A program made the position numbers and the translations under genes. Of a stretch of 64,000 nt of DNA, positions 10,363-41,442 are shown in pieces. The DNA is from Corallochytrium limacisporum Hawaii (Eukaryota; Protista; Pluriformea). Position 1 is the first letter of the stretch. Every line of letters begins with the position of its first letter. The DNA is taken from assembly GCA_002811645.1 (NCBI GenBank), contig PDIP01000073.1, positions 1-64,000 of the forward strand. Reading direction: 5' to 3'. The notes below the pieces were generated by a model, which saw nothing but the letters and a program-made list of their open reading frames with translations, searched no databases and was not told the DNA's origin.

Positions 10363-12039
10363 ATGCCCATGGTTGACACAGCAACGGGCGGCAGAAGCTT
10401 TGATGCAAGCTATGCTGGTGGTACACCATATCCGTCTACAAGTGTAAAACCGCTCGGGATCAACCAGAAATCGAACATCATCGGTGGTGTACAACAGCAG
10501 GGAAATCCTAATCCAATGCATGGAGCTGGAAAGTTCTTCTTCCGCAAGCGCCGCGAACGGGTCAACTGGAAAAACGTTGCAGCACTGGACCTGGACCGGG
10601 TGATCCGCACGGTGGACGTCAAGGCTTTGGCCATCAACCTCGACAACATTTGTTTTGCGGATCTCGACGCAGAAGACTTCCAATTCTTGGACCCTAACTT
10701 TAGCAAGCTCTTCCGACTGTCACAACTTATTATTGAATATCTTTGCCACTCCCAGGAACATTTGGTGAAGCAGATTGAAACTGCCCGAAAGGATGCGAAT
10801 GAAATATATGGCGAACAACAAAAGCTTGTGGAAGAGATTCGTCTACGCGACAGCCAAATCCTGGACCTTCGCAAAGAACTCAAACAGCGACGTAAGATCA
10901 TCGCCGCCTACCAGACCATGCTCAATACCGGCGGCGGTGGCTACCATCGCTGTACCTACTGCCGGAAGGCTTTTGTCACCGTGGCCTACCTACAGGCGCA
11001 CTTGGAGCGTCGTCACCCCGAATATGTGGTGCCCAACCCTCCTGAACCTGTACGCATCCATTTGGACAACCCACCGGAGCCAGTAAAGATTCCTGCGTCT
11101 GTTACCGCCGAGGATGTGCAGCGTATGATGAAGGAACTTACGGACAGTCTAACCAGGCAGTTTACAGCATCACAGGAGAAGCTGCGCGGCGAGCTGGCGT
11201 CAATGCAAGATGCACTGGACGAGGAGCGCCAGCATGCTAAGGGCCGAGAGGCCGATTTTGAGTCGGAGAAGGAGCGTCTGCGCCTGGAGCACCAGGAGGC
11301 CTTACTGGGCCAACGCGAGCATATGCGTGAGGGCCCAACACAGGCACGTAGCAGTGGCCGTGGGGCCGGTCCGGTTGGTCCATCCTCCATGGTCGGTGGC
11401 CGGCCTCGCGGTGCCCAAAACAAGCAGTCTCGCACTGCAGCGACCCATGGAACCAACGGCCCATCCTCAATGGGTGCCTTCCAGCGAAGTGGAGCAGGCG
11501 CATCGTCTCCTGGGCGTAACCCTATGCTCCCGCACAAAATTGCAGCGGGAGGTGGCATGGTCAGCCAGGAGCGTGAACCAGCCGGGGGAGCCCCTACCAG
11601 CGCACCGGTCGCAGCAACTGCACTGACCGACGACGATGAAGAGTTTTTCATGTCTGATGAAGAGGAGGATGCAACAGTTCCACGCGGAGCCGCTGGCAGT
11701 GATGATCACACCGACATCGTGGCGGAGTTCTCGCGGGCTCTAAAGCAAAATGGGTCAGGTATACCACAGATGGGTGAAGACTTTGGTGATATGGATGAAA
11801 TCAGCATGGACCAGGAAGAGGAAGGCCGCGATCCGTACGATGCTCCGGACGGCGATGACTCGTTCGAAGTCGACGTGCCGGAGGACATGGAGGAACGGGC
11901 AGGACGGACGCAGGAAAGCATTTATTCTTTCGACCATATACGCGTCGATAACAACCGCGCTGCCGCCAACCAGCCTCCCATTGAGGAGGACATGGCCGAC
12001 TTTGACGATATTGATCTGGATGACTTAAGTGTTGTGTAA
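10363..12039 (+). CDS. DZIP1: DZIP1/DZIP1L (Iguana)-like protein: Dzip-like N-terminal domain, C2H2 zinc finger, coiled coil, acidic tail
   Basis: FFFRKRRERVNWKNVAALDLDRV...NICFADL...DPNFSKLFRLSQLIIEYLCHSQE; C2H2 finger CTYCRKAFVTVAYLQAHLERRH. Confidence 0.88.
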   Translation: MPMVDTATGGRSFDASYAGGTPYPSTSVKPLGINQKSNIIGGVQQQGNPNPMHGAGKFFFRKRRERVNWKNVAALDLDRVIRTVDVKALAINLDNICFADLDAEDFQFLDPNFSKLFRLSQLIIEYLCHSQEHLVKQIETARKDANEIYGEQQKLVEEIRLRDSQILDLRKELKQRRKIIAAYQTMLNTGGGGYHRCTYCRKAFVTVAYLQAHLERRHPEYVVPNPPEPVRIHLDNPPEPVKIPASVTAEDVQRMMKELTDSLTRQFTASQEKLRGELASMQDALDEERQHAKGREADFESEKERLRLEHQEALLGQREHMREGPTQARSSGRGAGPVGPSSMVGGRPRGAQNKQSRTAATHGTNGPSSMGAFQRSGAGASSPGRNPMLPHKIAAGGGMVSQEREPAGGAPTSAPVAATALTDDDEEFFMSDEEEDATVPRGAAGSDDHTDIVAEFSRALKQNGSGIPQMGEDFGDMDEISMDQEEEGRDPYDAPDGDDSFEVDVPEDMEERAGRTQESIYSFDHIRVDNNRAAANQPPIEEDMADFDDIDLDDLSVV

Positions 12040-14110: not shown

Positions 14111-15553
14111 TCAGGCCGTAGGCCTTGCGTTCTTTACAGGGACTCGGTGGCCGTTGATGTAGACCTGGTCGTTTTCAGTGGCCTTGTTGGATTCCCCTTC
14201 TCGCTGTAGTTTGGAGAAATCCTGGGAGCCGGTGGTGACCTGGGAGTCTTGGTAGGCGTCACGGGGATAGGCAGGCTCTCCATGCTTGTACAGATCAATA
14301 CCTTCTAGTTCAACCTTCTCAGTCACGCGCACTAGACCAAAGAAATTGCCTGTGAAGAAGGCAATGCTCATGGTGACGCCAACCCATGCAATGATGGTGA
14401 GACATCCAACAATGTTCCAGCCGAACTGCTTGAAGGAATCCGAATCCCACTGGTAGAAGATACCGGTGTCGACGGAGAACAGAGGAGCAGCCAGAGTACC
14501 CCAGATGCCAGCACCCAGATGGACGGCGACAGCTTCAACAGGGTCATCAATTCCAGCCTTCAGAACCATGTTGGCCCAAATGACTTCAGTGATACCGGCA
14601 ACTATGCCGATCACGTAGGCGGCCCAGGGATAGACAGAGTCTACGCCGGCGCAAATTGCAACCATACCCCCGAGGGCACCGTTCACGGCACCAAGGAAGG
14701 ACCACTGCTTGTTCTGGATCCATAGAAAGATCAGAGCAGCGTTGGCACCGCCAGCACCAGCCAACAGAGTGTTGACGATGGCAGCATTCAGGGTGTAAGA
14801 GGAACCACCAACAACGGTCAACTCGGATCCACCATTAAAGGCCAGGAAACCGAACCAGAGGATGAAACCACCAAGAGCAGCCAGGACCGTAGAGTGACCA
14901 GGCATGGGCAAAGGACGACCAGCCTCGTCGAAGCGGCCAATACGGGGGCCAATGATGTAGGATCCGACCAGGCCGGCCATACCACCGACACAGTGGACCA
15001 TTGTTGAACCAGCGTAATCCTGGAAACCAATTGCTCCATCGTTGGGACCTTCGGTATCGAGCCAGCCACCGCCCCAGTGCCAGTGAGTAGCAATGGGGTA
15101 GACAAAGCCAGTCAAGATAATGGAATACATCGCGTATCCCTGAATGGTCATGCGCTCAGCGACCGCACCAGACACGATGGTGGCGGCAGTGGCAGCGAAG
15201 GCGAACTGGAACCAGAAGTCAGCGAAGAGACCACGGTTTTCGCAGTTATTCAGATCGTGCAAAGCGAAGAAGTTGTTGCCAGCAAACTCATTGCCGCCAC
15301 CGTAGGCGAAACCGTAACCGAGCAGCCAGTAGGATGTTGCACCGATCGCAACATCCATGAAATTCTTGAATAGAATGTTTGTGGCGTTCTTTGACCGAAT
15401 GGAACCAGCCTCGAGGAAGGCGAAACCTGCTTGCATTAAGAAAACGATCATACCAAAGATAGCCAGGAACAGCTGGTCAATGGAGACCTCAAGTGCGTCA
15501 ATGCGCTCAGTATCTGTCGTGGCCACAGGGCAGTTTGTCGCGCCGGCAACCAT
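14111..15553 (-). CDS. Ammonium transporter (Amt1-type), paralogue A
   Basis: FLMQAGFAFLEAG, FQFAFAATAATIVSGAVAER, DYAGSTMVH, GPRIGRF, LWFGFLAFNGGS and IDDPVEAVAVH motifs; twin His intact. Confidence 0.97.
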   Translation of the reverse strand: MVAGATNCPVATTDTERIDALEVSIDQLFLAIFGMIVFLMQAGFAFLEAGSIRSKNATNILFKNFMDVAIGATSYWLLGYGFAYGGGNEFAGNNFFALHDLNNCENRGLFADFWFQFAFAATAATIVSGAVAERMTIQGYAMYSIILTGFVYPIATHWHWGGGWLDTEGPNDGAIGFQDYAGSTMVHCVGGMAGLVGSYIIGPRIGRFDEAGRPLPMPGHSTVLAALGGFILWFGFLAFNGGSELTVVGGSSYTLNAAIVNTLLAGAGGANAALIFLWIQNKQWSFLGAVNGALGGMVAICAGVDSVYPWAAYVIGIVAGITEVIWANMVLKAGIDDPVEAVAVHLGAGIWGTLAAPLFSVDTGIFYQWDSDSFKQFGWNIVGCLTIIAWVGVTMSIAFFTGNFFGLVRVTEKVELEGIDLYKHGEPAYPRDAYQDSQVTTGSQDFSKLQREGESNKATENDQVYINGHRVPVKNARPTA

Positions 15554-22695: not shown

Positions 22696-24114
22696 TTAAA
22701 CCTCGTTGCCGTTGACAAAGACGGGTTCACCGGCGTCAGAGGCCTTGACGGCGTCACCGGGCTTCTTCATCGTTGAGAAGTCCTGAGAGCCAGTGGTGAC
22801 TTGAGAGTCACGGTAGGCGTCACGGGGGTAAGCAGGCTCTCCGTGCTTGTACATATCCAGACCCTCAAGCTCGACCTTCTCAGTCACACGCAGCAGACCG
22901 GTGGCCTTGAAACCGAAGAAAAAGATGGCCATGGTGACGGCAACCCAAGCAATGACGGAGATGTTACCCACGATATTCCAGCCGAACTGCTTGAAGGAAT
23001 CCGAATCCCACTGGTAGAAGATACCGGTGTCGACGGAGAACAGAGGAGCAGCCAGAGTACCCCAGATACCAGCACCCAGATGGACGGCGACCGCCTCAAC
23101 AGGGTCATCAATTCCAGCCTTCAGAATCATCTTGGCCCACAAAACTTCAGTGATACCGGCGACAATACCGATCACGTAGGCGGCCCAGGGGTAGACAGCG
23201 TTTACACCAGCGCAAATGGCAACCATACCGGCCAGGGCACCATTCACGGCTCCGAGGAAGGACCAGGCCTTGTTCTCGGCACGCAGGATGACCAGGGCAG
23301 AGATAGCACCACCGGCACCAGCCAACAGAGTGTTAACAATGGCAGCGTTCAGAACATAGGCGGAGCCACCAACAACGGACAATTCAGAACCACCGTTGAA
23401 AGCGAAGAAGCCGAACCAAAGGATGAAACCACCGAGGGCAGCGAGGACGGTAGAGTGACCGGGCATGGGCAGAGGGCGGCCAGCCTCGTCGAAACGACCG
23501 ATACGGGGACCAATAGCAATGGCACCGACCAAACCAGCAGTACCACCGACACAGTGGACCAGAGTGGAGCCAGCGAAGTCCTGGAAGCCAATGGCACCAT
23601 CGTTGGGACCTTCAGTAGCGAGCCAGCCACCACCCCACTGCCAGTGAGTAGCGATGGGGTAGACGAAGCCAGTCAGGACAATGGAATACATCATGTAGCC
23701 CTGGAGGGTCATACGCTCGGCAACGGCACCAGACACAATGGTGGCGGCAGTGGCAGCGAAGGCGAACTGGAACCAGAAGTCAGAGAACAGACCACGGTTC
23801 TCGCAGTTGTTCAGATCGTGGAGGGCGAAAAAGTTGTCGCCAGCGAACTCGTTGTCACCGCCATAGGCGAAACCGTAACCGAGCAGCCAGTAGGATGAGG
23901 CACCGATCGCAATATCCATGAAGTTCTTGAACAGAATATTTGTAGCATTCTTGGAGCGAATAGAACCAGCTTCGAGGAAAGCGAAACCTCCCTGCATCAA
24001 GAAGACGACCATACCCATGATAGCCAGGAACAGCTGGTCAATGGAGACCTCGAGGGCATCAATGCGCTCGACATCAGTCTCAGCAGTAGGACAATCAAAA
24101 GCACCAGCAACCAT
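22696..24114 (-). CDS. Ammonium transporter (Amt1-type), paralogue B
   Basis: Same Amt motifs as 14111-15553 (DFAGSTLVH, GPRIGRF, IDDPVEAVAVH); colinear and highly similar to paralogue A. Confidence 0.97.
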   Translation of the reverse strand: MVAGAFDCPTAETDVERIDALEVSIDQLFLAIMGMVVFLMQGGFAFLEAGSIRSKNATNILFKNFMDIAIGASSYWLLGYGFAYGGDNEFAGDNFFALHDLNNCENRGLFSDFWFQFAFAATAATIVSGAVAERMTLQGYMMYSIVLTGFVYPIATHWQWGGGWLATEGPNDGAIGFQDFAGSTLVHCVGGTAGLVGAIAIGPRIGRFDEAGRPLPMPGHSTVLAALGGFILWFGFFAFNGGSELSVVGGSAYVLNAAIVNTLLAGAGGAISALVILRAENKAWSFLGAVNGALAGMVAICAGVNAVYPWAAYVIGIVAGITEVLWAKMILKAGIDDPVEAVAVHLGAGIWGTLAAPLFSVDTGIFYQWDSDSFKQFGWNIVGNISVIAWVAVTMAIFFFGFKATGLLRVTEKVELEGLDMYKHGEPAYPRDAYRDSQVTTGSQDFSTMKKPGDAVKASDAGEPVFVNGNEV

Positions 24115-40798: not shown

Positions 40799-40808
40799 AA
40801 TATATATA
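40799..40808 (+). promoter_or_regulatory. TATA-like element upstream of the tRNA gene
   Basis: AATATATATA about 20-30 nt upstream of tRNA position 1. Confidence 0.5.
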
Positions 40809-40828
40809 CTATTTTTTTGCCTCGAGAC

Positions 40829-40954
40829 AATTGAGTAGCTTAGGGGTAGAGCATTGCACTCGTAGTGGATCAGTCAGCGGCCCTTCCATCTTCGGAGGAG
40901 GGTCGCTTGATTCAGGACATGCAAAGGTCGTGGGTTCGATTCCCATCTCAGCCT
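40829..40954 (+). tRNA. tRNA-Thr(CGT) with a 54-nt intron (40865-40918) and a mismatched 5' acceptor end
   Basis: D arm GCTT-AGGGGTA-GAGC; anticodon stem TTGCA/TGCAA with loop CT-CGT-A^A (intron at canonical 37/38); variable loop AGGTC; T arm GTGGG-TTCGATT-CCCAT; 3' acceptor CTCAGCC-T against 5' AATTGAG. Confidence 0.88.
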
Positions 40955-40975
40955 GGTCGCTCAGGCCAAGTTCAC

Positions 40976-40985
40976 TTTTTTTTTT
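40976..40985 (+). terminator. RNA polymerase III terminator (T10)
   Basis: T run about 21 nt after the tRNA 3' end. Confidence 0.8.
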
Positions 40986-41442
40986 CTCCATTTTTTTTTT
41001 GGGACAATATTTCCCCTCGTTTTTTTCGTCCTTTTCTTTTTTGTCCAGTTATTCTCTATGGTAGTCCCCTGGTCTCTATTCTTAGCACGGGCAGGGCGAA
41101 ACGTGCCGGTCCGCCCGCCCGACCAGCCAGCCATCCGAAATGACCCGCGCGGCTGGGCGGGAGCTACGTGGAGCGTGGCGTGCAGAGAAGTGTCCTGCGT
41201 CGCCGCCTGAGACAGCCTCTCGGTTTAAAATTTCGTTGTGGTGACGTGTCCTTGTTAACATGAACTCCGATCAGGTATAAATCTAGAATATGTGGACAAC
41301 CATATGGTTGTATGGCAAACGTGCTCGCATGTAACCTTGCATCGGTTTAGAAAGCGGACGTTGACCCCAGGAGAGCATGGTTCCATCGCGAAGACATTGT
41401 ATGAATACATAATTCAAAGACATAGCTACACATTAGTGAAAC

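Follow-up and report, generated by a model that had tools for sequence, protein, structure and literature searches.

Five nuclear tRNA genes of Corallochytrium limacisporum with defective 5' ends and a close upstream promoter: candidates for an internal Pol III start and templated completion

Five nuclear tRNA genes of Corallochytrium limacisporum, those for Thr(CGT), Ser(AGA), Ser(TGA), Leu(TAA), and His, are damaged at positions 1 to 4 only, with arms, introns, and terminators intact, and each lies at a fixed distance from an upstream promoter (25, 25, 25, 25, and 24 nt). The best explanation, to which we give a somewhat better than even chance, is that Pol III would start inside the tRNA and that a polymerase of the TLP class would then fill in from the triphosphate end; templated fill-in of some kind, whether after such an internal start or after trimming, is probable. 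Four things read from the DNA carry this explanation: the mismatch pattern, the promoter distance, a calibration of the transcription start, and a gene for the enzyme.

Thr(CGT) is the one tRNA gene in the window, by which we mean the whole 64,000-nt stretch of DNA analyzed here; a script and manual reading placed its positions 1 to 73 at 40829-40954 (+). An earlier note, made from the letters alone, had described canonical D, anticodon, and T arms, A1xC72 and A2xC71 mismatches with a U3.G70 wobble ahead of Watson-Crick pairs at positions 4 to 7, and a TATA-like element upstream with a T10 terminator downstream. The sequence bears out all of this, and Rfam family RF00005 matches the gene with 40.3 bits, over model positions 4 to 67 only (40832-40950). 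Absent from that note was a 54-nt hairpin intron at 37/38, called by ARAGORN at a relaxed threshold, i(37,54), together with the fold; at default settings ARAGORN missed the gene. The locus lies on a nuclear contig with eukaryotic genes around it (Table 1). By DNA search of the genome the gene is single-copy. As to whether it is the only Thr(CGT) gene, a point the earlier note had raised, family and pattern searches also found no second one, these being lower bounds in an incomplete census, and a loose pattern search gave hits at background level only.

Table 1. Features of the tRNA-Thr(CGT) locus, in window positions, and loci of T-loop introns in the genome
Feature	Position	Strand	Remarks
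Upstream Pol III promoter, TA-repeat then T-run	40801..40818	+	Anchor (offset 0) at 40804, 25 nt 5' of position 1
Promoter-tRNA spacer (5' flank in the earlier note)	40819..40828	+	Predicted untranscribed; leader-trailer pairing, p=0.137
Genomic tRNA positions 1-4	40829..40832	+	Mismatches at 1 and 2, wobble at 3, pair at 4; G1 G2 C3 U4 expected after templated synthesis
Predicted transcription start G5 (offset 29)	40833	+	First pyrimidine-purine step at an offset of at least 27
Possible alternative start A1 (offset 25)	40829	+	Pyrimidine-purine step
Exon 1: acceptor 5' strand, D arm, anticodon CGT (40861-40863)	40829..40864	+	
Hairpin intron, 54 nt, canonical 37/38 site	40865..40918	+	ARAGORN, fold
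Exon 2: anticodon stem 3' strand, T arm, acceptor 3' strand (putative fill-in template, 40947-40953), discriminator U73 (40954)	40919..40954	+	
3' trailer	40955..40975	+	GG at 40955-56 is the donor if the gene were circularly permuted
T10 Pol III terminator	40976..40985	+	Sequence
T-loop introns	L045, L044, L093, L166, L161, L105, L101		

The mismatch in Thr(CGT) is confirmed as real and beyond chance. A sequencing or assembly error at 40829-40831 is a negligible prospect, since the two source DNA runs contain all words sampled from the stretch (81/81) and the pattern recurs, linked to promoter distance, in four further genes. A marine metagenome contig from an independent sample is identical over 40904-40988, and its three differences from the locus all fall 3' of the terminator; it stops short of 40829-31, as do the reads of four runs, which is what an error would have in its favor. 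The 5' part of the gene comes from one strain only, and an exact-protein look-up and a metagenome pattern scan for a homologous locus including that part in another strain were both blank. Coverage of the locus in two RNA runs was that of the neighboring mRNA only.

A census of the assembly (24.1 Mb, 286 contigs, including a 40-kb mitochondrial contig) gave 44 conventional nuclear tRNA genes and one permuted gene; it covered tRNA types other than Tyr, Arg-TCT, Ile-TAT, Gly-CCC, and SeC. Position 1 is unpaired in 4 of the 44, namely, Thr(CGT), Ser(AGA), Ser(TGA), and Leu(TAA). In the first three of these the mismatches are limited to the first three acceptor pairs, with a canonical 3' strand; Leu(TAA) deviates at position 4 as well, and in His position 3 forms a wobble pair and position 4 is mismatched. 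The defect for which the earlier note had proposed a tally is thus found in three or four nuclear genes besides Thr(CGT). None of the 39 remaining nuclear genes has a mismatch at positions 1 to 3; two have one at position 4 (both Lys-CTT copies), and Ala-TGC has one at position 6. The 3' strands of the odd genes are conventional: the complement for Thr(CGT) is G1 G2 C3, as in Thr(AGT) of the same genome, which begins G1 G2 C3 and has U73; that for Ser(TGA) is G1 A2 C3 A4, as in Ser(GCT); and that for Leu(TAA) is G1 G2 U3 G4, as in Leu(CAG) and Leu(AAG). No further copies were found for the anticodons of the odd genes in this incomplete census.

The promoter element, a TA-repeat followed by a T-run, has 50 hits in the genome, compared with 18 for the reversed pattern, and precedes 33 nuclear tRNA genes and the 5S rRNA gene. 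The four genes that leave position 1 unpaired all have it exactly 25 nt from the promoter, and in the 29 other genes with a called promoter this distance is 33 to 101 nt (Fisher p=2.4e-5, for a pattern noticed post hoc); that of Arg-CCG, for example, is 58. His stands at 24 nt by the T-run anchor, which groups it with these four: T-run-anchored distances run from 15 nt in His to 16-17 nt and then to at least 24 nt. Four further hits combine the promoter with an A-box-like sequence at a distance of 24 to 27: C262:105670-105707 (-), which would have an A as its first base and an initiator step at 4, C196:19506-19544 (-), C241:44434-44473 (-), and C276:11545-11581 (-). The C196 candidate, of Ser/Leu type, might be a second copy. 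The same element also precedes structured sequence at L095 (C44:96544+), L099 (C278:92500-), and L096 (C173:7678+), candidate unannotated Pol III RNAs that have no Rfam match and, in two cases, end in a T-run.

The distances also bear on whether these are pseudogenes or dispensable isoacceptors, in which loss of the leader put the start inside the gene and the dead gene drifts, with Thr(TGT) reading ACG. Thr(TGT) is indeed intact, a T6 run in the Leu(TAA) intron could terminate transcription, and a second Ser-type gene may exist. Decay would not, however, be expected to give a distance of 24 to 25 nt five times, nor to confine the damage in five unrelated genes to positions 1 to 4 while sparing arms, introns, and terminators. 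Moreover, no second copy was found for any of their anticodons, and decoding depends on His, Ser-AGA, Ser-TGA, and Leu-TAA; that 85 nt are unchanged in a second strain is a weak further point. We therefore regard decay as quite unlikely and lean, at modestly better than even, toward a functional single-copy nuclear tRNA-Thr(CGT) gene, as the best explanation would have it.

Where Pol III starts relative to the promoter was calibrated in three ways. Eukaryotic 5S rRNA retains its primary 5' end. The 5S gene carries the same promoter element, with an Rfam match that begins at offset 27 from the anchor; a U6 gene was not found in the genome, so that 5S is the sole RNA with a known primary 5' end available for calibration. 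All 29 of the 29 long-leader genes have a pyrimidine-purine step at offsets 27 to 29, where shuffles give 19.4 (p=4e-5; 1e-4 when all 3-nt windows are counted), and Pol III is known to prefer to start at a step of this kind roughly 27 nt from the TBP site (PMC11005993). Finally, stems between leader and trailer are frequent in this genome, and significant ones were present in 7 of 15 long-leader genes from offset 27 on and in none of the 15 at offsets 14 to 26 (p=0.006); the stem begins at offsets 27 to 31 in 6 of these 7, and the long stem of iMet runs from offset 29 through to the terminator. The three calibrations agree in placing the Pol III start, by inference from sequence, 27 to 29 nt from the promoter. 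The helix between the flanks of Thr(CGT), which the earlier note took to be a maintained feature, corresponds to offsets 15 to 24. It can be drawn, with a duplex energy of -9.6 kcal/mol, but is not significant against trailer shuffles (p=0.137); given that value and the probable position of its bases upstream of the start, its maintenance is unsupported.

With position 1 at offset 24 to 25, offsets 27 to 29 fall on tRNA positions 3 to 5 in the five odd genes. Transcription is predicted to start at the first initiator step there, which falls on A3 for Ser(AGA), on A4 for Ser(TGA), and on G5 for the remaining three, Leu, Thr (40833), and His. Upstream of the predicted starts 13 of 17 positions are non-Watson-Crick, and from the start on none of 18 is, a tally that is partly built in because the genes were located via pairing at positions 4 to 7. 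Unlike the tally, the gene-by-gene fit of start to mismatch is not built in: Ser(AGA) is correct from position 3, Ser(TGA) from position 4, and the two genes that are wrong at 4 have a predicted start at 5. A further pyrimidine-purine step lies at A1 (offset 25) in Thr and Ser(TGA). A start at A1 is thus possible for these two genes, but the calibration would put the mismatched bases upstream of the start.

A start at A1 or earlier is what editing by removal and replacement would call for, with a nuclease trimming the mismatches before a TLP refills the end. The mismatch pattern and the enzyme speak for this equally well, and the step at A1 in Thr and Ser-TGA suits it. However, it leaves the 24- to 25-nt distance of all affected genes unexplained, position 1 is a pyrimidine in Ser-AGA and Leu, and offset 25 lies outside the calibrated window of 27 to 29; we consider it unlikely. 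Of the nuclear 5' editing put forward in the earlier note, the part in which a Thg1-like polymerase rewrites the end with the 3' strand as template is supported as probable, and trimming as the origin of the truncated end loses its support, because the promoter geometry suggests that the mismatched bases are mostly never transcribed.

Use of the tRNAs as encoded, with a frayed acceptor end, is very improbable. Single internal mismatches are tolerated in this genome, as in Lys-CTT at position 4 and Ala-TGC at 6. Two terminal mismatches and a wobble, however, abolish the 1-72 pair, on which tRNA processing, charging, and elongation factor binding rely, and the predicted start leaves these bases out in any case. 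In silico, the Thr(CGT) exons with a filled-in 5' end fold as a cloverleaf (-25.5 kcal/mol), and the genomic exons alone do not (-16.6 kcal/mol).

We propose instead a programmed nuclear route independent of RNase P, in which Pol III would start within the acceptor stem and a 3'-5' polymerase would write the first two to four bases with the 3' strand of the same RNA as template; we put this at marginally above even. With the promoter only 24 to 25 nt before position 1, the primary transcript of Thr(CGT) would begin at G5 with a 5'-triphosphate, four bases short. The DNA at positions 1 to 4 would act as a promoter spacer, free to drift, which would account for the mismatches. The TLP would use the triphosphate as an activated end and add U4, C3, G2, and G1 opposite positions 69 to 72, and the intron, trailer, and CCA would be processed in the usual way. 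Since the wrong bases are probably never transcribed, neither RNase P nor a trimming nuclease would be required; that RNase P is present is implied by the 39 genes with leaders. The actual starts in the five genes, the link between enzyme and substrate, and the mature sequences are predicted from the gene structure. Two points weigh against the proposal: a start at G5 leaves just three acceptor pairs, and published 5' editing is limited to positions 1 to 3 (PMC4284800).

The genome encodes two Thg1-family proteins, a canonical Thg1 and, as the earlier note's reading would lead one to expect, one TLP. The latter matches bacterial and archaeal TLP structures with E values of 3e-22 and 9e-16, compared with 1e-4 to 1e-5 for Thg1, and keeps both catalytic Asp residues and the conserved loop; the protein is identical to EukProt Clim_evm18s3. 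Its nearest relatives are proteins of Capsaspora, Creolimax, and dictyostelids. Identity with the Dictyostelium protein is 39% over the core, and the Dictyostelium hit has TLP4-type loop and helix motifs, which brings the Corallochytrium enzyme near to TLP4 with a putative orthology; TLP4-like genes are present also in species not shown to have 5'-defective nuclear tRNAs. The N-terminus is lysine-rich, basic, and not presequence-like, and predicts a location outside mitochondria. Positions 1 to 3 show no mismatch in any of 23 mitochondrial tRNAs, and G-1 is encoded in mitochondrial His, so the TLP appears to have no editing task in that compartment. TLPs can extend triphosphate ends without re-activation (PMC12632743, PMC4284800) and restore 5'-truncated tRNAs from the 3' strand independently of the anticodon (PMC4284800, PMC12632743). 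The canonical Thg1 (L050:1039-2091, -) has an arginine-rich, presequence-like N-terminal extension ahead of the usual start. On the mitochondrial contig, a tRNA with anticodon TCT (L046:6686-6770) resembles a copy of tRNA-Ser(GCT).

The genome also contains a circularly permuted tRNA gene, Ala(CGC) (C242:177990-178160, -), in which the 3' part (16-73) is followed by a 26-nt spacer and the 5' part (1-15). Its junction at 15/16 forms a bulge-helix-bulge with 4/4 central pairs and a 5-bp outer helix. Permuted tRNA genes have been published from algae and one archaeon (PMC3978253), and we found no report of one from Corallochytrium in the literature searched. T-loop introns (59/60) with a bulge-helix-bulge were seen in Cys, Arg-ACG, Gly-TCC, Gly-GCC, Leu-CAA, Ser-CGA, and Leu-TAA. 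That of Leu(TAA) (L101:148-204, contig C238) contains the T6 run, and a long T-run after the gene is absent; either Pol III in this species transcribes past T6 or the gene is truncated.

Thr(CGT) might itself be permuted, with its junction at 2/3: the splicing endonuclease would cut a bulge-helix-bulge across the acceptor stem and the body would be circularized, so that the GG after U73 becomes G1-G2 and mature position 3 is U. The permuted Ala(CGC) gene and the strict bulge-helix-bulge introns of Cys, Arg-ACG, Gly, and Leu-CAA show such splicing motifs in this genome, and motifs as good as that of Thr (3/4 central pairs) and that of Leu (11-nt spacer) arise in 1.5% of flank shuffles and 0.9% of shuffles, respectively, by criteria set after looking. 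This reading would, however, require 40819-40830 in the RNA, 5' of the calibrated start, and a 0-nt spacer, sterically tight and below the 1 to 74 nt published for permuted genes, among whose tabulated junctions none is in the acceptor stem (PMC3978253). Donors for Thr(CGT) after a 9-nt spacer have 1 to 2 of 4 central pairs; Ser-TGA has no donor, and those of Ser-AGA and His are poor. As the Ser(TGA) defect lacks a donor and the calibration leaves the leader untranscribed, both this scheme and the U at position 3 that it entails are highly unlikely. Two other constructions were rejected: a pair of acceptor-stem introns (10 and 13 nt, giving C73), for which a manual check found no good motif on either side, and a 5' exon within the leader, since the Thr and Leu leaders have no usable GG.

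An internal start followed by fill-in would work like the 5' editing of mitochondrial tRNAs in Acanthamoeba, Dictyostelium (DdiTLP3), and chytrids (PMC4284800, PMC5041481), with which it shares mismatches at the start of the 5' strand, a canonical 3' template, and a TLP gene, but it differs in compartment and probably in the removal step. The genes here are nuclear, and the mitochondrial tRNAs have no need of editing; the deviation reaches position 4 in Leu and His; and the defect is tied to promoter distance, with removal probably absent. The closest enzyme is DdiTLP4, an essential cytosolic 3'-5' polymerase of Dictyostelium (PMC5041481, PMC12632743), whose TLP4-type motifs occur in the 39%-identical protein and which repairs truncated tRNA in vitro (PMC12632743, PMC5041481). 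DdiTLP4 has no known substrate among truncated cytosolic tRNAs, whereas five are predicted from gene structure in Corallochytrium. The leaderless tRNA genes of Nanoarchaeum equitans (PMC4284800) likewise use a fixed promoter distance to set the 5' end without RNase P; there, however, transcription starts at +1 of an encoded sequence, whereas here the start is predicted at +3 to +5, positions 1 and 2 are wrongly encoded, and only five genes are concerned, in a eukaryote that has leaders on its other tRNAs. With the permuted genes of Cyanidioschyzon, prasinophytes, and Thermofilum (PMC3978253) Corallochytrium shares TATA-led tRNA genes, bulge-helix-bulge splicing, and the permuted Ala(CGC); a permuted Thr(CGT), in contrast, would have a junction and a spacer that are not on record and would need untranscribed bases.

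A 2014 review knew of no nuclear-encoded tRNA that is 5'-edited, except for G-1 on tRNA-His, and listed variation in start sites as a source of TLP substrates that had yet to be tested (PMC4284800). A 2025 preprint describes the essential role of cytosolic DdiTLP4 as unknown, as are those of many other TLPs, because a source of truncated tRNAs cannot be predicted (PMC12632743). We found no report of internal start and fill-in of nuclear tRNAs in the literature searched, which covered few subscription papers. Outside mitochondria this essential enzyme class has no known job, and the candidates would be its first natural substrates; the genome names five of them, with expected starts and mature sequences, in a holozoan that is in culture, a unicellular relative of animals. 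If the proposal is true, a cytosolic or nuclear TLP gains a job, the never-identified trimming nuclease is no longer required, five tRNAs each contain bases that the sense strand of their gene does not encode, and tRNA "pseudogenes" with 5' mismatches elsewhere merit a check of their promoter distance.

Some smaller observations were made along the way. The 3' halves of tRNA-Asp and tRNA-Ser(GCT) are duplicated beside the intact genes (L064, L052), perhaps as remnants of integration sites or as assembly duplicates. The window contains two paralogous ammonium transporter genes 7 kb apart (14111-15553 and 22696-24114, -) and a Dzip1-like ciliary gene (10363-12039, +), the latter in a species without a known flagellum.
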